A stretch of 63,162 nucleotides of DNA, the filler included, from Hyphochytrium catenoides (lineage: Eukaryota; Protista; Hyphochytriomycota), in the NCBI GenBank assembly GCA_900088475.1. It is 5 parts of 5 records of this genome, joined end to end, with 100 filler letters (N's around TTAATTAATTAA, not from the genome) between each part and the next. Parts side by side here need not be neighbours in the genome. Positions count along the whole stretch, not along the records: positions 31,160 to 39,067 come from FLMG01001753.1; 4 more parts are not named here. The stretch is one strand, 5' to 3'. Below, one piece after another: positions 4,880 through 39,067 of the stretch; positions within the stretch are counted from its first letter, which is position 1, and every line of letters starts with the position of its first letter. The notes below the pieces were generated by a model. It had not been told where the DNA came from. It was given only the letters and a program-made list of their open reading frames with translations, and made no database searches. A program made the position numbers and the translations under genes.

Positions 4880-5860
4880 TTATCGAGCTCCTAGACAGCC
4901 TCTGCCTCCATCAATGCTGATGCATTCTCCCGTTAAGAAAAGTGCCTGCAAAAAAGAGAGATATTACCAATGACAAGAGCTCCATTTTAAGCAGCTTGCA
5001 GTGCTGCCTTTACCTTGTCACTAGCCAGAAAGGCGATAAGGTTCGCGACCTCCTCAGGTTTGCCCACCCTTCCTAGGGCCTGAGCAATGGGATGGCAGGT
5101 GCTTATAGATCTGTCAATGAAACCCTGATACGTTTCCTCTGACATGCCGCCTCTCCTATGCAGCTCCGTGGCAATGACACCTGGGTTTACGGCGTTCACC
5201 CTTATACCGAATGGAGCGAGGTCTACAGCAGCGCAACGTGTGAACATATCGACGGCAGCCTTGGATGCACAGTAAGTTGCTACGCCGCCAAAAGATTGCT
5301 TCCCGTTAACGCTGCTGATATTTATAATGGCAGGCCCAGCCGCTGTTCCAGCCGCCTTTAGGTGAGGGATACATTGCACCATAACCTCAAAGACGGATCG
5401 AGTGTTGGCATTGAAGATCTTATTGTACTGTTCTAGATTGCAGGCATCAGAGCCAAAGGCGCCTCCCTAGACGGACCATGGGTGTTAGTTGACCCTGTGC
5501 CCCATGAGCTTCTTAGAACGCCTCACCTGCAAGATGCCGGCGCAGTTAACCACCGTAGTTAGTCCATCTAGTTTCGCTGCCGCTTCCTTAACCACGGCCT
5601 CAGCCTGTCCCTCCACCTCCAGGTCAGCTTGAAAGGTCAAGCAGTTGATCTCCTCTTTCAAGGCTCTCAAAGCCTCTGCGTTTCTTCCTGTTGCGAGGAC
5701 CTAATGGGGGTGATAAAGCTCTCGTTAGGCAGGGCAAGATCTTTTCATATGCTGACAATTGTGGAGGCACCTGGGCGCCTTCCTTTGCAAACAGTTTGGC
5801 GGTAGCCTTGCCAATGCCAGACGTGGCTCCTGTTATCAGGCACTTTTTGCCAGCCAACAT
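4880..5860 (-). CDS. Short-chain dehydrogenase/reductase (classical SDR, FabG-like), 4 exons
   Basis: TGATSGIG nucleotide-binding motif, VNCAG, NISS, YCASK catalytic motif, VNPG and C-terminal TGECISIDGG. Three ~60-70 nt GT-AG introns restore the frame. Confidence 0.93.
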
Positions 5861-6863
5861 AGTACCTGTCACTGAGCCTAGAGGCAATGAATCACGTCTG
5901 TTAAGTCTGATCAAGCAGTCAGAGCAGCAGTTGTGCTGTTGGTCGGGACGGGGGCTCCGGAGATGATGAGTGACCTTATTATGCAATGGCTAAGCCGTAG
6001 TAAGCCTATTGCTTGATGTGGAGCACCTCGATGGAACTTGACGAACTCATTGTCGTTTACTGACGGATCCTGGCTTCTGATCCCAAGGAAACATTTCCAA
6101 TGAAAGGAAGGTTGGTCAAGATTCCGCCTCTATATATAACAACAGTTCAGGTTGAAAGATTCGCGCGTTGCGCCTCGAAAGGATTCAATCGGAAAGATGA
6201 AGTTTGATAAGAGGAAACCAAACCAAGAGAAGGCACAGCTTTTCCTTAGTAGGAGCCCTTGCACCTCGAGGGTGAGAATGCGCTGAGAGGTTGGCATGGC
6301 CGCCTTCCTCTCCGAAGATGATAGCCGTGAGGAAAATGGGAGTCGGGCCTTTCTATAGTTCAAGGGTAGAGCTACACCACGATCTTTGAGGTAGAGAGCT
6401 AGAGGAGTAGTCCAAGTCCTAAGGGCATCTCGACGACTTGCTGCGCTGCTGCCTCATATATACTAATACCTGGAATATGCATCCAATTCTCACCCTGGTA
6501 AGCCAACTATCAGCATCTCCGCCTTCGACATCGACAACACTCTTCCCAGACTCAGTCGAAGGTAACGACTGCATGCGGACCCTGATCTCATGCGACCACG
6601 CCAATGCCCATTGATAGCATTATATCTTACTCCTAGCAACCTGGGACTGTCACAAGATATGGGCTTCCGGACATGTCGCCTTGGCTTTAGCATAGCCTTT
6701 CCCTAGAACACTCACTTTATGCACCTACGTAAGGTGCTAAAAATAATAAGAGAACGACTAGGCGGGACCCACTATCCTTTGACTATTGACGCCAGCTTGT
6801 GTTTCTACTCGTGTCTCCCGCGGAGTAACTTCATCAAGAACAAAGATGTGCTCAGTGGAGATC

Positions 6864-7953
6864 CTAAAGGGAACCACCCTCGCTCTTGATCCTTTCCACC
6901 TAGTATTGACGCAAAGGGAGTTAGGTAACAGAGATGCGGAGGTTCGAGAGATTTATCCTCACATCAAGATAAGCAGTGCCAAATGGGAGAAACTCGTCGG
7001 CATGAATTTTTGCTAAGCCTTGGTAATCCGTTGCCTGCTGCTCTACCGTCGGCTCCTACGGATCCCAACAAGGTCAGCGTTATATGCTTCATCATTCCAG
7101 AATGACCAACACTTACATCATCTGGATCCAGCTCGCGCATAAAGCTAGCGGGGTTTCCTCCCCAAAGCTAGTATTAGAGCAGATCTGTTAGAGCTCGATT
7201 GCGGCCCATATCGGGTAGAGCTTCAGTTCTTACCTGGAAGGCAGGAATGCGCTGCCCAGGGAGAACGACACTGCCTGCTGCAATCTGTGCGCCTCGTTCA
7301 ATGAAAGCCCCGTCCATAATGACAGAGCCCATGCCGATAATGACATGGTCCTGGATAACACAGGACATCAAGGTACAAGAATGACCTACAGAGTTATACA
7401 TCAGGTCTTCCAAGAGAGCCAAAAAGGACATAGCTTTAGCTCGTATGACCTATCGTCACATAGCTTCCAATTTTTGTGCTTGTGGGGAATCCTGTCTCTG
7501 ATGACCTGGCAGTACCGACTACCGTGTTGTCTTGCACGTTGGTGAAGTGAGCAATCTCAACGGAGTTCTCGTCACCTACATAAAGAGACAAGGCTTAGCT
7601 TGATTGAAAAGGATGAACGCAGACGCAGTGATTACCTCTGATGACGACATTGTACCAAACGGAGCTATTGTGACCAATGAGGACGTCACCAATGACAGTG
7701 GCGTTAGGAGCTACCCAAGCGTCATGGACAACACCTGGTCTTTTGTCTAGGATATTCATAATCTGCCGATGGCGGGAGACTATACCATTCTGGATTAGCG
7801 AGCGGTAGAGTTATTGACAATAGAGATCATAGGGGACGCACATTTTTCCTGATAGAAATTTTCGCCAGCCGCGCGCAGCCCTGCCCGATCAAGGGCCTGT
7901 CCGGTTTCCCGGAGGGCTCTCCCCAGCTGAACTCTGAACCTGGAAAGTACCAT
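6864..7953 (-). CDS. Mitochondrial gamma-carbonic anhydrase-like subunit of complex I
   Basis: Spliced product MVLSRFRVQLGRALRETGQALDRAG...SRHRQIM...WVAPNATVIGDV.IG..SSVWYNVVIRGD...NVQDNT...IGH..L..C.I...V.IGMGS..MDGA...LWGGNPASFMREL. Hexapeptide repeats plus the typical GRALRETGQALDR N-terminus. Confidence 0.92.
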
Positions 7954-31159: not shown

Positions 31160-31289
31160 TGCGCAGCAGTGTTAAACGCAATCTCCGGCATGCTGAGCAA
31201 AGCGCAGCCAGGAATCCGACCTTGGGCGTTAGGATTCAACGCCTTAAAGCGCCCACGGAGCAGGGTCACTTCCGCGGAGGTGTCTAGGA

Positions 31290-31331
<42 letters not shown>

Positions 31332-31796
31332 AGAGAGAGGGAGAGTAAGGTCAGAGAGGATAAACGTCAAGGCAAAGAGAGAGAGACTCACAGAGAGAGA
31401 GAGATCAGAGAAGGAAAATGATAAGGGCGGACAAGGAAAGGGACAGAAAAAACGGACAGACAAAGGATCCCCAAGATGCAGTGAGTAGAGATTGAAAAGA
31501 GAGAGAGAGAAAAAGAGAGANNNNNNNNNNNNNNNNNNNNNNNNNNNNNNNNNNNNNNNNNNGAGAGAGAGAGAGAGAGAGATGAAGACATGGCGTGGAC
31601 CCGTTCCTAGAAGAGTGTGCCAAAAGGGAGAGAGAGAGAGAAGAGAGACAGAGGAAGAGAAAGTGACAGAAAGAGAGAGAGAGACGCATGCGACCGAACG
31701 AGAGACAAAGAAAAACAAAGAGACAAAGAGAGACAGAGAGAGGAGGGCGAAGAAACGGAAACAGAGACGAAGACAAAGAGACAGGGAGAGAGAGAA

Positions 31797-31827
<31 letters not shown>

Positions 31828-31940
31828 AACTGTAAGGGAGACTGGGCCTCTGATTGGGAGTGAGAGCAGCTCTGTCGTACGTACACTTCGCCTTGTTAAG
31901 GACGTTAAGGATCTCATCCTCAGTCAGGAAGTTGGTCCCC
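31160..31940 (-). CDS. Calcineurin B/CIB-like EF-hand protein, N-terminal fragment
   Basis: GTNFLTEDEILNVLNKAK, then T|GTACGT...CTAG|AC, gives YTSAEVTLLRGRFKALNPNAQGRIPGCALLSMPEIAFN. This aligns by eye to CNB F..EIKRL.KRFKKLD...G.LS..EF.SLPEL..NP. Confidence 0.65.
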
Positions 31941-31944
31941 NNNN

Positions 31945-31978
<34 letters not shown>

Positions 31979-32241
31979 ATAAAGACCACGAAGGACAGAG
32001 AGGAGCAAGAATAAAGAGACGTGTCGACTCTCTGGCAAGGCTAACAATGCGCTCAAGGAAGGAAGAATGCCTAAACTGAGCTGGGCAAGAGCTGCCAGCG
32101 CAGGGGAAGGTCTAGGATGAAAGTGCAGAGAGCGAGAGAGAGAAAAAGGAAGTTTGATGACCGATACTTTAATCCAGCAGAGGAATGATGACTCTTGCTC
32201 TCTCTTGACTCTCGCTCTCTCTCTTTCGCTCGCTCTCTTCT

Positions 32242-32286
<45 letters not shown>

Positions 32287-32578
32287 TCTCTCTCTCTCGC
32301 TCTCTTCTCTCGCTTCTCTCTCTCGCTTGTCAATGTCCTTTCGTACTTCTAGCGTTAGCGGCTAGATCGAGAGCAAGAAGGAGGAAGTGAAGAGGAAGTA
32401 AACGAGAGAGCCAGGAAAGTAGAAGCTGCATGATGGAGATGGCCAGGAAAGAGACGAGAGAAGAGAGAGAGGGAGAGAGAGACAGAAACAGGAGAGAAAG
32501 GGACAGAGAGAGAGGTGGCCGGCCGGTGGGGGAAAGCAGTCCTCGTTCTCAGGTCAACAGCCACCAGCACGGGGAGAC

Positions 32579-32610
<32 letters not shown>

Positions 32611-32699
32611 AGTTAAAAGAAGGTCGAGGGGAAAGGGAGCACACGGCGGGTTGGAGGGTTTGTCGGTGTCACTTTCCTCCGACGCTCTTCAGAACAATA

Positions 32700-33909
32700 A
32701 TGAAAGGGAAGAAGCTTGTCTCCCGAGAGAGAGAGGCCGCGGCACAGAGTCAATGGGCAGAGCGCATTCAAACCTCCTCAGCAGCCAACCAAGGAAGAGA
32801 GAGACAGCATGAGGGAGAGAGAGAAAGGGATGATCAGGAGAGAAAGAGAATGGTGGACGTGCTGGGCAGATGGAGCCAGCGGTACAGAGGGATGATCGAG
32901 GTTGAGCAGCAGAAGCCTAACAAAATGTTAGGAACGATGGGCGTGGGCGGGAGGCTAGCGCGGATCTTTATAGAAGAGGCAGTCTATCTTCTAGAGAGAG
33001 GACAGCTAGAAGTACGACCGAGAGAGAGAGAAGGAGAGAGAGAGACTGTGCGAGAGGAGGAAGAAAGAGATCGGTCACACCTAGAGAGAGAAGGGAAGGA
33101 CGAGAGAAGAAGAAGAGAGAGAGAGGAAGAAGAGGATGGACAGAGTGCAAGAGAGAAGAGAGAAGAGTCTCTTCCTCTGCCGCATGCACTTCTTCAGAGT
33201 GAGACAGAGTGTGCGATTCCTCTAGAGTGCTATCTGGTGTATAAGACGCTGAGAGATGAAGGACTCATACCGAGGAGACATGCTCTCTTCCAGTACTTTC
33301 AGAAGAGAAAAGATGAACCAAAGAGAGAGGGAGAGGAAGCCAGGCTAGAGAAAGAGAAGGAGTCGTATTGCGCTGACGATAGGAGAGACGCCATCAAGAG
33401 AGAAAGCACCGCGAAAGCACTCTTTCTTCTCTCTCCCGAGTCGATTGATGGCCATACTTCGAGGCCTAGGATGTGGCGGAGTAGAGAGAGACCAACAGTG
33501 GAGGAGAGAGACGCAGGTAAGAGAGAAGAATGGGCAGATTGACTACTCTCACATATTAAAACTCTCCTCTCTGACTCGTCTCTCCGATTGTTTGGCCATC
33601 TTATCTCCTACTAGTTCCCAGACACTGTCTCTCTTGTTAGTCCTCCTCCCCCCTCCCATCAATATCTTTCCATCTCTCTTATTTCTTTTCTTTCTCTCTC
33701 TCTCGCTCTCTCCCTCTCTTATTTTCTTGCCCACTGCTTTGTTCATCTTGACTTCTTTCTCATTATTTCGGAAGACTCTCTCTCTCTTGGCTCTCTGTCT
33801 TTCCTAGGCGAGGCTGTTCCTTTAGCCTTTGATGTCTACGAGGCCAAGACCTTCAGCAAGCGCAACCTAAAGCCTTACTTCCGTGTCTGTATCCTCAGGT
33901 GGGGCCACA

Positions 33910-33940
<31 letters not shown>

Positions 33941-34234
33941 TTTGCTTTCACCTTCTCTCTTTCACTTTTCGTTTTCAACTCCCGTCACTCTTCGCCTCTG
34001 CCACCTGTCGAAAACTCGTTTCAGACGTCCATGAAGATTCTCTCTCTTGACATCTTCTCTGTTTCTCTCTCCTCTGGATTCTCAAATCTTCTTTCTCGGT
34101 CGTCCTCGGATCGCTTTCCGTATCGAGCGCTCACTTTCCGCTAGTTGGATTTCTAGCGCTTGCTTATCCATTCCGCCCCTCTCGCTCCTCTTTCCCTGCT
34201 GCTCTCTCTGTGTCCCACTTCCTCTGACTCTGTT

Positions 34235-34275
<41 letters not shown>

Positions 34276-34517
34276 CTCGCTCTCTCTCTCTCTGGCTCTC
34301 TCCCTACAGCTACCGCGACTTTCTTCCTTCAGTCCAGGAGCTCTTGCGACTAAGTAAAGATGACAACGAACCCACTCCCTGTTGTTTGGCAGTAGTGGAT
34401 GTGGACGGCAGTGTTGTCTTCTTCTCTCTCTCTTCGGAGCCTTCCTCCCTCTCTCTTCAACCGAGTAGCATTGACGCCAGTCTCTCTTCCTCTCTGGCGG
34501 GATTGGCACTAGGCTGA
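32700..34517 (+). CDS. TSEN54: tRNA-splicing endonuclease subunit Sen54-like, 3 exons
   Basis: Exons 32700-33516, 33808-33898, 34310-34517. Motifs GTMG....IFIEEAVYLLERGQLEV, YLVYKTLRDEGLIPRRH, AFDVY....FSK....PYFRVCI and LAVVD.DGSVVFFSL. Confidence 0.8.
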
Positions 34518-34589
34518 AGCATGACGGGTGGGAGAGAGACGCTTGTCCCTTTGCAACAAACAAAGGAGGGAGCCCAATGCCATCCTTGC

Positions 34590-35144
34590 TTAACGGCGGC
34601 TTGTCTCCGCTGCGCAACTTTGTCCATCTCTTCCTGCGCTGGGAGAAAATTGCTCTGTCATTGTTCCGCCACCTCCTTCCTGTCCCAAAAGGGCAACGAG
34701 AAGCTGCTGCAGCTGCTCCTCTCCTCTCTTTGCCTGGTCCTGAAGCTGTTGAAGGCTTTGAATGGCTTTTTGAAGCTCCGAGGCCATGCATTTCCTGTCC
34801 GCGACGCACTGGTTTATAGAGACGGAGAGACTCCATCTTTTCTCCCACAACTCTCTCTTTTCTTCTCTCCCTGAGGCATTTGTCATGCTCTGCCGCGATG
34901 AAGGCGGCTGATCAGAACTTGCATGAGTCAGAGAGGCAGGAGTAGGCGGAGGATCGGACAGAGAGGCATTAGGGGAGACGCTGGTGGACATGGAGAAGAG
35001 AACGTCCGTGGTGTAGAGCCAGCCAAGGAGGCAGAAGAGACCGACAAAGCCGTACTGAAGCTTATTGAGTCTGGCTTGGAACTCCACCTCTTCCGATATT
35101 CGATTGAGAGAAGAGGAAGACGGCCGAGCAGTCTGAGGCTCCAT
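34590..35144 (-). CDS. Hypothetical single-pass membrane protein with a C-terminal coiled coil
   Basis: ATG at 35144, TM segment YGFVGLFCLLGWLY, Ser/Pro linker, heptad-like MASELQKAIQSLQQLQDQAKRGEEQLQQLL. Confidence 0.5.
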   Translation of the reverse strand: MEPQTARPSSSSLNRISEEVEFQARLNKLQYGFVGLFCLLGWLYTTDVLFSMSTSVSPNASLSDPPPTPASLTHASSDQPPSSRQSMTNASGREEKRELWEKRWSLSVSINQCVADRKCMASELQKAIQSLQQLQDQAKRGEEQLQQLLVALLGQEGGGGTMTEQFSPSAGRDGQSCAAETSRR

Positions 35145-35445
35145 CACTCTTCCTCTAGCTCCGACAACGGGGAGAAAGGACGGTCGGTGGACGGAGATCA
35201 AGGTACTCGCTCGTTTACTTTTGGCGATGGGCTCTACTACTGGGCAGAGCTGGGAGTTAGTGATTGGGACCAAGCAGGATGAGAGATAATGAGCTCTCTA
35301 TCGATAAGAATGAGTGAGAACAACCATAGCTCTTTCTGCTCTTTTGTTGACTAAGTGTCTACCTCTTCCTTCCTTCTTTCCGTCTCCTCTTTTCTTTCTC
35401 ATCCTTCCGTCCCTGTGCGCGCGCGCTCTCTGTTTCTCTCTCTCC

Positions 35446-35482
<37 letters not shown>

Positions 35483-36297
35483 TNNNNNNNNNNNNNNNNN
35501 NNNNNNNNNNNNNNNNNNNNNNNNNCTCTCTCTCTCTCTCTCTCCCTCTTTCCCCTCTCCTGATGTGATGGAGGCCGTCATATCAACGGCACGAAGCAGA
35601 GCAGAAACGAAAGGGCACGCTCTGATGTGAATATTACTAATAATTCTATGGCAGTCTTTACAGTATGATCCAGCGGTTCCTTAGGTCTTATTATTGATCC
35701 TGTAAGCACTTTTCACTCCCATCGCTAGCCTTAGATGCTCGCATTAATTCTCGTCTTATCCAGAGATTGTCGCCATTGTTGTATTCAGTGTTACCGAGCA
35801 GGAGCCTTACGGGCCGAGTTGTTTAGGTGTTAATTGTGAATGAATAGTGTTAGATCTGTTTCCTAATATGGTCGTAGATGTCCGAATGAACAGATATATC
35901 AAGTGAGTGATAAGGCTGCGTGACGGAAAATGTGACAGACATACCGAGGATTTGACGGTAGAAGATGAGAGAGACAACGATGATAGAGCAGCAGCTTGGA
36001 CAAGAGAGAGCTGTCTAGGAGGCTGATGGCACAGCTGTAAGGGCAGAGGCCAAGAGGAGTATCGGCCTGTGAACGCCCTAATGTCTGTGAGGATAGGTCG
36101 AAAGACTAGCAAAGCCATGAGGCTAACGATGGACAACTCTACTTTTCAATACTCATCATTTGTTTAGCAGGGAAATCCCTAATAAAGGCCTACATCTTCC
36201 TTCCCAAAGCGTAGACCCCAAAACCTCTTCGCCACAAAGCTGTCGTCGGAAGAAAGTTCCGCAATGTGTTTTATACTCTCTTCTTTCTGTTTTGGTT

Positions 36298-38562
36298 TTA
36301 GTCGACGGTAACGGCCTTGGCCAAGTTCCTAGGGACATCTGGGTTAATGCCTCTCTTCACGGCAAGTTCATAAGCAATGAGCTGCATGGGCACAACAGCC
36401 AGAAGAGCGGTCAGTGGACCGTTGCTGGGAATAGGGATGATGTCATCGGCGACGCCGTCGCACATAGCGGGGTTGTCGGTAATGACAATGGTGTATGCAC
36501 CTCTTGCGCGAACTTCATGGGCAGCAGTCTTCATGAAAGGACCATGCTCATCGTCCAACACCACCATGATGATGGGGGTAGGGCCGAACTTGCCATCTTT
36601 CCCCTCAATAAGGGCAAAAGGTCCGTGCTTGAGAGCACCTCCGCCGTAGCCCTCAGCATGCAAGTAGGTGATTTCCTTGATCTTGAGCGCACCCTCGAAC
36701 GCGATGGGCTCACCATAGCCCTTGCCCAGTACAAACATATGCTCAGACTTGAGCAGCTTGTCCGCAATCTCAGCACATTTTTCTCTTGTCCTAAGCACCA
36801 TCCCAAGAGTGATAGGAAGCCTGTGCATGGCCTGGATCAGCTCCTGTGTCTTTTCTTTGTTGGCAGTGGCCCTGTTCTGGGCAAACCAAGAGGCAATAAG
36901 GCCAAGGACAGTCACCTGGGTGACAAAGGCCTTGGTAGAAGCTACAGCGTTCTCTCTTCCGGCATTGAGGTAAACTCCGCACTTGGTGGTGCGGGCAATG
37001 AGAGAGCCCACAGAGTTCACTACCGAGAACATAGGAACCGCAGGTTGCATTGCCTCAGCTAACTTCAACACTCGGTGCACGTCCTTGGTCTCTCCACTCT
37101 GAGAGATGACACAGACACCTCCGTTGTCCTTGGGAATGCTAGCTGTGGTCGCCTCCGCTGCATCAAGGGTCTGAACTGTCCTAAAGCTGCCGAGGTTCTG
37201 CATGAGACGTGCACCATACTTTCCAGCATTAAGTGAGGTACCGCAAGCAGCAATGAGAAGATCCTGAATCTTTAGCATGTTCTCCTTGTTATGCTCCAAA
37301 CCACCAAGATAAACAGTGTGCTCGCTGACACGACCACCGTAGCCCAAAGAAGCAGCGACAGCCTTGGGTTGCTCCATGATCTCTCTAATGGTCCAGTGAG
37401 GGTAAGGATCCGGCGTGAGACGGACCTTGACATTAGCAGCTTGCTCTACACGGCTGGTAGGGAACCGCTGAAGCAGCTGGCTGTTCTCGTCTTCCTGAGG
37501 AGAGAGTTCGGCGGTTGTGGACCTAACGACGGCAACCTCACCATCCTTGAGCGCGATAAAGCGCTTAGTATGGCGAGAGAACGCAGGTGTCTCAGAAGCG
37601 ATGAACATCTGGTTAGAGCCGTAGCCTAGAACGAGGGGAGAGCCGTTTCTTGCCACCACAACCTGGTTAGGATATTTAGGAGACATGACACAGATACCCC
37701 AGGTGCCTTCGAGTCGGTTGCAAGCGAGCTTTGTTGCAGCCACAACGTCCAAGCCGTCCTGCATAAGTGAGCCAATGAGCTGAGCAATAACCTCAGTGTC
37801 CGTCTGACTCTTGAACTTCACACCATCAGCCATCAACTCCTGCTTGAGCTCATTGAAGTTCGTGATAGTGCCGTTGTGCACTACAGCCACTTGGTCCCAC
37901 ATATCGTGGTGGGGATGGGCGTTCTCATCCGTCTTCCCTCCGTGAGTAGCCCAACGCGTATGCCCAATGCCCACATGGTTGCCAATGTGCTTGCCAGCGT
38001 CCTTCTTCAGAAGAGCCAGAGAGTCAGCAGTGCCCTGAACAGAGGCATATTTGCTGGTGACGATCTTAGGAGGTGGGCCGCGGGCGAGAGTGGCAATACC
38101 CGCCGAGTCATAACCTCTATTCTGCAGGATAGTAAGACCCTCAAGCAGATAGTCCTTAGCCTCCTCGTTGTCTCCTCCAACAATGCCTACAATACCACAG
38201 GCTTCGGCCTCCTCCTTGGACATCAAGCTAAAAATGGCGGCACCAGCGGCAGCGGCTGCTGCGAGCTTCTTCATGGTGGAGAACGTGCTGCTGTCATTAT
38301 TCACAGCGGCGGCAGCAGCAGGCAGATTGGAGGACAGCCGGGCTGCATTATAACGCGGAAAGTTGCGCCCACGAGAGAAAGAAGGAAAGGAAAGAGAAGA
38401 GCGGATGTGAGAGGGAAATGGAGAGAGAGAGAGGCTGTCAGTGAGTGCATGTCCGATATGAATGTTAGGGACGGAGAGCTCGTTACCTTGAATGCTCTTC
38501 CTAGCGTTATGACTGATAGAGCGGCCTGGAATGGCCCTCAGAGTCTGAGAGAGAGCGAACAT
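36298..38562 (-). CDS. glmS: Glutamine--fructose-6-phosphate aminotransferase (isomerizing; GFAT/GlmS) with a ~73-aa presequence
   Basis: CGIVG (Cys at 38199-38197), NRGYDSAG, GHTRWATHG, HNG, TDTE, SQSGET, VASTKAF, LKHGP and C-terminal PRNLAKAVTVD. Probable 144-nt intron 38486-38343 in the leader. Confidence 0.96.
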   Translation of the reverse strand: MFALSQTLRAIPGRSISHNARKSIQGNELSVPNIHIGHALTDSLSLSPFPSHIRSSLSFPSFSRGRNFPRYNAARLSSNLPAAAAAVNNDSSTFSTMKKLAAAAAAGAAIFSLMSKEEAEACGIVGIVGGDNEEAKDYLLEGLTILQNRGYDSAGIATLARGPPPKIVTSKYASVQGTADSLALLKKDAGKHIGNHVGIGHTRWATHGGKTDENAHPHHDMWDQVAVVHNGTITNFNELKQELMADGVKFKSQTDTEVIAQLIGSLMQDGLDVVAATKLACNRLEGTWGICVMSPKYPNQVVVARNGSPLVLGYGSNQMFIASETPAFSRHTKRFIALKDGEVAVVRSTTAELSPQEDENSQLLQRFPTSRVEQAANVKVRLTPDPYPHWTIREIMEQPKAVAASLGYGGRVSEHTVYLGGLEHNKENMLKIQDLLIAACGTSLNAGKYGARLMQNLGSFRTVQTLDAAEATTASIPKDNGGVCVISQSGETKDVHRVLKLAEAMQPAVPMFSVVNSVGSLIARTTKCGVYLNAGRENAVASTKAFVTQVTVLGLIASWFAQNRATANKEKTQELIQAMHRLPITLGMVLRTREKCAEIADKLLKSEHMFVLGKGYGEPIAFEGALKIKEITYLHAEGYGGGALKHGPFALIEGKDGKFGPTPIIMVVLDDEHGPFMKTAAHEVRARGAYTIVITDNPAMCDGVADDIIPIPSNGPLTALLAVVPMQLIAYELAVKRGINPDVPRNLAKAVTVD

Positions 38563-38841
38563 GATTCTTCTTGGTAGGCCGAGGAGAAAGACTCTCTCAC
38601 TGGCTCCTTGGGTATGACAAAGATAAAGATAATCTGAGAGCACCCTAAACTTCGTCGGCGCTCTTTGTCCCTTTGCTGCGCTTCTATCGCTCTTGAATCT
38701 TCTATAAAATCTTCCTCAAAGAGCTTGCCACGATCTGGCTGCAGATGGGAGACACTTGGACAAGTTACCGTTGAGTTGGAGCTTGTAGGATTTCTTCTCG
38801 TAGAGACAGAGTTAACTCCAGCGTACTGTGAGGCGTGAGAA

Positions 38842-38875
<34 letters not shown>

Positions 38876-39067
38876 CAAGTGATAGACAGATGAGGCAGAG
38901 AAACAGAGAGTGAGAGAGAGAGCCAGACGGGGATAAAGAGAGCGAGGAAGAGAGAGGGAGAAAAGGAGACACGAGAGACAAAGGAGAGAGAGAGTAAAGG
39001 AGAGAAGGGGAGAGAAGGGGCAGAGAGAGAGAGAGAGAGAGACACGGGGAAGAGAGAGAGAGAGAGA

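Follow-up and report, generated by a model that had tools for sequence, protein, structure and literature searches.

How does an enzyme that works through a free N-terminal cysteine become active when that cysteine lies behind a long leader? We address this question for a minus-strand gene in a 63,162-nucleotide stretch of DNA from Hyphochytrium catenoides (assembly GCA_900088475.1; hereafter the window), in the piece at 31160–39067 that comes from record FLMG01001753.1. The one clear gene in that piece encodes GlmS/GFAT, the rate-limiting entry to UDP-GlcNAc and, through it, to chitin, N-glycans and glycosylphosphatidylinositol (GPI) anchors. The chemistry of N-terminal nucleophile (Ntn) amidotransferases requires the free α-amino group of Cys1. 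To our knowledge, GFAT is regarded as cytosolic wherever it has been studied, with Cys1 freed by methionine removal. We find that the leader of the window protein has the anatomy of a bipartite signal for sorting to the mitochondrial intermembrane space, and that its removal by the inner membrane peptidase (IMP) is, on balance, probably what frees Cys1.

The open reading frame (ORF) at 36298..38643 on the minus strand is a complete GlmS/GFAT according to the ORF list and Pfam, which matches it to GATase_6, GATase_7 and SIS, the last in two stretches of which the second is C-terminal of the first. It gives a single collinear alignment with E. coli GlmS from the Cys to the last residue (E = 5e-98), and its catalytic Cys falls opposite residue 1 of the mature E. 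coli chains 2J6H_A and 1JXA_A. This Cys is invariant in both alignments of homologues (A1 and A2). Human GFAT1 gives a poorer and less collinear match than E. coli GlmS, and the gene is hence a GlmS of bacterial type residing in a eukaryotic genome. Identity to Saprolegnia GFAT is 73–75%. An AlphaFold2 (AF2) run on the exon 2 part, with an alignment of 43 homologues, returned pLDDT values above 90 throughout the glutaminase domain. E. coli GlmS and human GFAT1 are likewise two-domain enzymes and align from Cys1 to the C terminus; they differ in starting Met-Cys, so that only methionine removal is needed, whereas the window protein carries a long leader.

The first in-frame ATG of the gene is at 38562. 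The initial annotation held that no Met precedes the Cys, and indeed the Cys codon (38199–38197) has none immediately before it; the nearest in-frame Met codons, Met66 (38221–38223) and Met49 (38272–38274), lie 8 and 25 residues upstream, and neither is conserved in homologues. Segment 38486–38343 is a probable intron, judged by its composition, codon score, splice dinucleotides and the leader length that results. It is 70% pyrimidine, resembling the CT repeats of intergenic DNA, and its codon-usage score is 0.03 per codon, against 0.30 and 0.17 for the leader exons and 0.43–0.49 for the gene body. Removing it (38486..38343) leaves a leader of 73 residues, within the 56–76 of the nearest relatives, that is identical to the spliced leader quoted in the initial annotation, and a protein of 706 amino acids; without splicing the leader would have 121 residues and the protein 754. 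Since the intron is in frame and stop-free, the ORF survives its retention, a property that carries little weight in so pyrimidine-rich a stretch. A transcript that retained the intron would still encode the full precursor, the leader being lengthened by 48 Ser/Pro/Phe-rich residues.

The start of the gene was also compared with the Saprolegnia diclina genome (JH767132.1), where leader and Cys lie in one exon and the first 144 residues are contiguous. The S. diclina orthologue (extract 5001–7174) has a single intron, in the glutaminase domain after residue 144, and none in the leader; its intron position is therefore not common to the window gene. An ATG spliced straight onto the Cys codon would refute the initial annotation, but an unseen exon joining an ATG to the Cys is very unlikely because of this single S. 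diclina exon and the transcript-derived complete ORFs of other homologues. We rejected a gene-model artefact in which translation truly starts at the Cys, for there is no preceding Met, the leader is kept in transcript-derived ORFs and in Saprolegnia it shares an exon with the Cys. A start at Met49 would give a 25-residue leader resembling a textbook signal peptide, and a start at Met66 an 8-residue, PurF-type-like propeptide. Seven RNA runs share words with the gene (6–14% of its words), and their contigs match parts of the coding body at 99% identity. The S. diclina neighbours (Zf_WRKY19-like, Calx-beta and EF-hand/ankyrin genes) show no obvious synteny with the window piece.

The leader opens with a basic stretch rich in Arg and Ser, continues through an uncharged Ala/Gly-rich helix of 16 residues and an acidic linker of six, and has an A-E-A abutting the Cys. 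Residues 1–45 include five Lys or Arg, one Asp or Glu and ten Ser or Thr. The uncharged core, Leu52–Ser67, is mostly Ala and Gly and reaches a Kyte–Doolittle maximum of 1.88 over 13 residues. The A-E-A site lies 6 residues past this core and 7 past the 13-residue hydrophobic window, and four of the seven residues between that window and the Cys (S-K-E-E-A-E-A) are charged. AF2 predicts a 19-residue helix at residues 47–65 (pLDDT ~70), coil at 66–73 and the first glutaminase strand from residue 75, right after Cys74. The Arg/Ser-rich start, the hydrophobic segment and the A-x-A exactly at Cys1 described in the initial annotation are thus all present in the sequence. The site for the mitochondrial processing peptidase (MPP) with Arg at −2 that it also proposed is indistinguishable from a chance match: A-R-L-S-S fits the pattern, but such fits are expected by chance in an Arg/Ser-rich leader.

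The same layout recurs well beyond Hyphochytrium. A word-based search returned 120 close homologues, the nearest from oomycetes (Saprolegnia, Aphanomyces, Pythium and Phytophthora) and the next from diatoms, dictyochophytes, Pinguiococcus, the plasmodiophorid Spongospora and the chlorarachniophyte Partenskyella. With few exceptions they are 640–750 residues long and so carry an N-terminal extension; many are transcript-derived complete ORFs. The layout is common to 94 homologues from these same groups, and comparison of the leaders shows, for stramenopiles and Rhizaria, that both the hydrophobic segment and the site before the Cys are conserved. Because of this conservation, the layout is beyond chance.

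Conservation extends to the individual positions before the Cys. Across the 94 leaders, position −3 is A/T/S/V/I/L in 91 (Ala alone in 59), −2 is Asp or Glu in 71, and −1 is always one of C/N/A/S/T, with Asn in 24. The first 101 leaders (those of at least 15 residues from the first homologue search) have C41, A24, N23, S6 and T6 at −1, D38 and E38 at −2, and A63, T16, S9, V7, P3 and I2 at −3. A 13-residue window with a Kyte–Doolittle mean of at least 1.5 is found in 89 of these 101 and a hydrophobic segment in 89–96; the window ends 7–12 residues before the Cys in about 78 of 92 leaders. The first 25 residues average 4.7 Lys + Arg and 0.19 Asp + Glu (79 leaders with an initial Met and an N-region of sufficient length). 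Among 82 full-length leaders, the net charge ahead of the core averages +6.7 and is positive in 81, and that of the flank from core to Cys is negative in 60. Their uncharged cores are a median of 18 residues long, with 57% A/L/G, and 67 of them contain no Pro. The −1 residue tracks phylogeny: diatoms, Pythium and Phytophthora have Cys there, the window protein, dictyochophytes and Rhizaria have Ala, and Asn occurs in Saprolegnia, Aphanomyces and several further clades.

These features resemble those of IMP-processed proteins of the intermembrane space. Reviews of mitochondrial sorting describe the intermembrane-space signal as having two cleavable parts, a presequence and, after it, a hydrophobic sorting signal, the latter removed by the IMP; IMP substrates share a hydrophobic −3 residue and a preserved distance from transmembrane segment to site, and natural Imp1 substrates have [I/V][H/D/F/M]N before the cut and [D/E] after it. 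Stramenopiles encode both Imp1 and Imp2. The yeast cytochrome c1 precursor, an Imp2 substrate (6GIQ chain D), reads ...VAAAGITASTLLYADSLTAEA and then MTAAEHG. The mature yeast chains 1EZV_D, 1KB9_D and 1KYO_D begin MTAAEHG, and the cut therefore falls after A-E-A; the Candida protein has T-A-D-A at the corresponding place. Cytochrome c1 combines a basic presequence, an Ala/Gly/Thr-rich uncharged stretch, an 8-residue acidic linker and a cut at A-E-A, to which correspond, in the window protein, the 16-residue uncharged core, K-E-E-A-E-A and then the predicted mature N terminus. The cargoes differ: cytochrome c1 is a membrane-anchored respiratory cytochrome, whereas that of the window is a soluble enzyme whose new N terminus would be its catalytic nucleophile.

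The window protein, dictyochophytes and Rhizaria have the A-[D/E]-A form, which agrees with the Imp2-type site. In 24 of 94 leaders (Saprolegnia, Aphanomyces and several further clades) the form is x-[D/E]-N and bears the hallmark of Imp1: these GFAT leaders share an Asn at −1 and an Asp or Glu at −2 with the yeast Imp1 substrates cytochrome b2, Cox2, Mcr1 and Gut2, the Saprolegnia and Aphanomyces form being x-D-N, and the distance from segment to site is likewise preserved. The window site itself is Imp2-like rather than Imp1-like. A parallel is Smac/DIABLO, an unrelated protein sorted to the intermembrane space, in which removal of the sorting signal (ascribed to the IMP; PARL is listed for it as well) gives rise to a functional N terminus; there the exposed residues are a binding motif, not a catalytic residue. 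The likeness to IMP-processed intermembrane-space proteins that was first noticed in the window leader alone is thus upheld by some 94 homologues, by the A-E-A and spacing of cytochrome c1 and by the Asn at −1 in a quarter of the leaders.

We infer the import route, the compartment and the protease from this layout as follows. GFAT would be synthesised in inactive form, as a precursor bearing a bipartite mitochondrial presequence, the basic N-terminal part of which would carry it through TOM and TIM23. The Ala/Gly-rich uncharged helix (residues 52–67) would then arrest transfer in the inner membrane, the basic side facing the matrix and the acidic linker and enzyme facing the intermembrane space. 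A matrix peptidase may trim the first part. A signal peptidase of the Imp1/Imp2 type in the inner membrane would cut after A-E-A, yielding the free N-terminal Cys for the Ntn glutaminase and releasing soluble enzyme into the intermembrane space. That activity should appear only after cleavage, as the initial annotation had proposed, follows from the established need for a free Cys1 α-amino group. The intermembrane space is open to cytosolic small metabolites through porin, and in this location fructose-6-phosphate, glutamine and glucosamine-6-phosphate would be exchanged with the cytosol by that path.

That GFAT is targeted to mitochondria in diatoms and oomycetes has already been predicted in print. 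In Cyclotella, three of four GFATs are predicted to be mitochondrial by several programs (Traller et al. 2016, PMC5124317). Two 2026 preprints, on Thalassiosira rotula and on Phytophthora infestans (bioRxiv 10.64898/2026.07.27.741032 and 10.64898/2026.07.09.737548, one for each species, in either order), agree: the former repeats the mitochondrial prediction, and the latter gives a DeepLoc prediction of mitochondria for PITG_02122 and places GFAT among enzymes predicted to be mitochondrial in oomycetes and cytosolic in non-stramenopiles. These papers thus concern the same enzyme family and reach the same call from sequence predictors. The call poses a puzzle that all three papers note, raised first for Cyclotella and again for T. 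rotula, in that mitochondria do not make fructose-6-phosphate; for Cyclotella it was also remarked that the pathway's single-copy steps are predicted to be cytosolic (PMC5124317). The available portions of the three papers make no mention of a hydrophobic sorting segment, the intermembrane space, the IMP or a leader that ends at the catalytic Cys, and the literature searched yielded neither a link between such a signal and Cys1 nor a description of this enzyme combined with a sorting signal. The leader anatomy described here offers a concrete and testable way out of the puzzle. An intermembrane-space location would remove the paradox of substrate supply and would need no organellar hexosamine pathway; the organellar entry point to UDP-GlcNAc suggested in the initial annotation does not follow, given exchange through porin and later diatom steps that are predicted to be cytosolic. 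If this model holds, a metabolic enzyme would be added to the very short list of IMP substrates, by a new route of Ntn hydrolase maturation. Cell-wall and glycan precursor supply would then be tied to mitochondrial import in oomycete pathogens and chitin-producing diatoms, in which the processing step could be a lineage-specific control point.

A wider and more doubtful proposition, which we put forward only tentatively, is that mitochondrial import is the obligatory activation step for all hexosamine synthesis in stramenopiles and Rhizaria, GFAT being a zymogen activated by the IMP. If so, chitin, N-glycans and GPI anchors would draw on a UDP-GlcNAc supply that hinges on membrane potential and on competence for import. 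The mature enzyme would reside in the intermembrane space or, as with fumarase, return to the cytosol after cleavage. GFAT would be the first known case of an Ntn hydrolase that owes its activation to a signal-peptidase-type protease and not to itself or to methionine aminopeptidase.

Several observations weigh against removal of the leader by the IMP. No RNA was found for the start codon and intron, the contigs of the public runs leaving 38095–38810 uncovered. The best 18-residue helical hydrophobic moment of the window leader is not above chance, being reached by 1296 of 2000 shuffles. The resemblance to Imp1 substrates is incomplete: position −3 of the GFATs is mostly Ala, Thr or Val, not Ile or Val, and +1 is Cys, not Asp or Glu. 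Moreover, the commonest form of the site, x-[D/E]-C (diatoms, Pythium and Phytophthora), has a small −1 residue and is without documented natural IMP precedent. The leader statistics are uncorrected for shared ancestry. Finally, our literature search returned no experimental localisation or N-terminal data for any member of this group, and the T. pseudonana N-terminome supplements contain no GFAT peptide.

The reading that shares most with IMP processing is that the leader targets or anchors the protein at mitochondria and the bond before the Cys is then cleaved by the enzyme itself, through Ntn autoproteolysis. We regard this as rather unlikely. The propeptides of PurF and PPAT are about 11 residues long, and we know of no GlmS that self-processes. 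B. subtilis PurF and human PPAT (MEROPS C44) have the same Ntn fold and a Cys1 that is masked until the propeptide is removed; a review describes the few residues before the Cys of class II amidotransferases as autocatalytically removed. These self-cleaved propeptides are short and have no membrane segment, whereas the window leader has 73 residues with the anatomy of a targeting and membrane-sorting signal. A second class of leaders, found by a search with a dictyostelid homologue, speaks in favour of the idea. The Amoebozoa-like orthologues (dictyostelids, Pelomyxa, Balamuthia and others) have leaders of 25–60 amino acids that contain no hydrophobic segment. Near the start stands an R-[R/L]-L-x-[V/I]-x-x-x-H-L motif, whose Arg never varies and whose His-Leu is conserved to at least 90%, and for which AF2 predicts a helix of moderate confidence and then disorder; a variable linker follows, and [D/E/N]-[T/C/V/A] precedes the Cys. 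These proteins expose the same Cys without a membrane segment, and must therefore have an IMP-independent route to free Cys1, which in turn leaves room for self-cleavage in the whole clade and counts against the IMP. An acidic −2 is common to both leader classes. What self-cleavage leaves unexplained is the small or aliphatic −3 residue, present in 91 of 94 leaders that have the membrane segment but in only 9 of 20 that lack it (Fisher p = 7e-8, with no correction for common descent), together with the fixed 7–12-residue spacing from segment to site and the identity with the A-E-A of cytochrome c1. Because −3 differs between leaders with and without the segment, it provides evidence from sequence that this rule may come from a membrane peptidase rather than from the enzyme.

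Entry into the secretory route, with the leader acting as an endoplasmic reticulum (ER) signal peptide or type II signal anchor that ER signal peptidase would cut, strikes us as quite improbable. The ER lumen is not known to be supplied with fructose-6-phosphate or glutamine. Translation from Met49 would indeed yield an n–h–c signal peptide of 25 residues with A-x-A, and some homologue leaders have only 20–36 residues. Yet the internal Met is not conserved, the core begins only at about residue 52, and what precedes it is the long, basic, acid-free region kept positive in 81 of 82 leaders. The charged K-E-E-A-E-A after the core is unlike the c-region of a signal peptide, and the Asn at −1 in a quarter of leaders is typical of Imp1. 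Published predictions go both ways: the Cyclotella GFATs also have weaker ER signal-peptide predictions (PMC5124317), a point for the ER and against the mitochondrion, and one T. rotula GFAT is predicted to enter the ER, but DeepLoc, HECTAR and other predictors favour mitochondria. Least probable to our minds is a matrix or inner-membrane-anchored protein trimmed by another protease, or a regulatory propeptide unrelated to sorting. Moderately hydrophobic Ala/Gly-rich segments do sometimes pass into the matrix, which counts in its favour. The published predictions, in the portions available, specify only 'mitochondrial'. The residues at −2 and −3 of the Cys site are acidic or small and never Arg, and therefore MPP would not cut there; the charge asymmetry and signal-peptidase pattern point instead to the outer face of the inner membrane, and fructose-6-phosphate is not made in the matrix (PMC5124317). 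Two further candidates were rejected: plastid targeting, as the layout is the reverse of a signal peptide plus transit peptide, is present in plastid-less oomycetes and has Cys at +1, and rhomboid cleavage, as the cut would fall outside the hydrophobic core.

The nearest bacterial relatives of the eukaryotic proteins are 607–609 amino acids long, start Met-Cys and are 60–68% identical to them. Several are labelled as Patescibacteria or Uhrbacteria metagenome-assembled genomes, and about 60 more proteins are of this length. In a midpoint-rooted FastTree of 115 mature domains, the window protein is basal in a well-supported group of 32 sequences that contains all oomycetes, and the Met-Cys bacterial sequences form one group adjoining the dictyostelid branch. 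The tree thus places the source of the gene among the stramenopiles, near the oomycete genera sampled but not within them. The position of these bacterial relatives beside the dictyostelids hints at possible gene transfer between such bacteria and eukaryotes; we draw no direction because the tree is midpoint-rooted. Coordinates of the gene and leader features are collected in Table 1.

Table 1. Positions of the GlmS/GFAT gene and its leader, counted along the whole window.
Feature	Position	Strand	Basis or remarks
GlmS/GFAT gene, start to stop codon	36298..38562	-	stop codon 36300-36298; ORF list, Pfam, alignments
Coding exon 1 (leader residues 1-25 plus one base)	38487..38562	-	Arg/Ser-rich, no acidic residue; codon score 0.30
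Probable intron, 144 nt	38343..38486	-	GTAACG...TGCAG, phase 1, in frame, stop-free
Start of exon 2 (leader residues 26-48)	38275..38342	-	A-R-L-S-S as possible MPP site, then Ala-rich and Asn/Ser-rich spacer
Met49-Lys-Lys and uncharged core Leu52-Ser67, candidate stop-transfer segment	38218..38274	-	Kyte-Doolittle, AF2 helix
Acidic linker K-E-E-A-E-A (-3 Ala, -2 Glu, -1 Ala)	38200..38217	-	consensus of 94 homologues
Catalytic Cys codon	38197..38199	-	Cys74 in the spliced precursor; Cys1 once mature
Class II glutaminase (Ntn) domain, best Pfam match within it	37591..37992	-	GATase_6, E = 1e-21
First SIS (sugar isomerase) domain	36892..37260	-	PF01380, E = 7e-30, in two stretches

The rest of the piece at 31160–39067 is rich in repeats. 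Long GA/CT dinucleotide microsatellites flank the genes at 31294–31345, 31628–31827, 32198–32324, 34239–34302, 35426–35483 and 38837–39067, and many of the ORFs listed in these regions are repeat translations. Short runs of N, marking assembly gaps, occur near 31.47 kb, 31.95 kb and 35.5 kb, and no tRNA was found in the piece. Apart from GlmS/GFAT, Pfam detects only the N-terminal domain of the tRNA-splicing endonuclease subunit Sen54, and that weakly (PF12928, E = 5e-6), in a 370-amino-acid Glu/Arg-rich ORF at 32430–33542 on the plus strand, which is largely a translated GA repeat.

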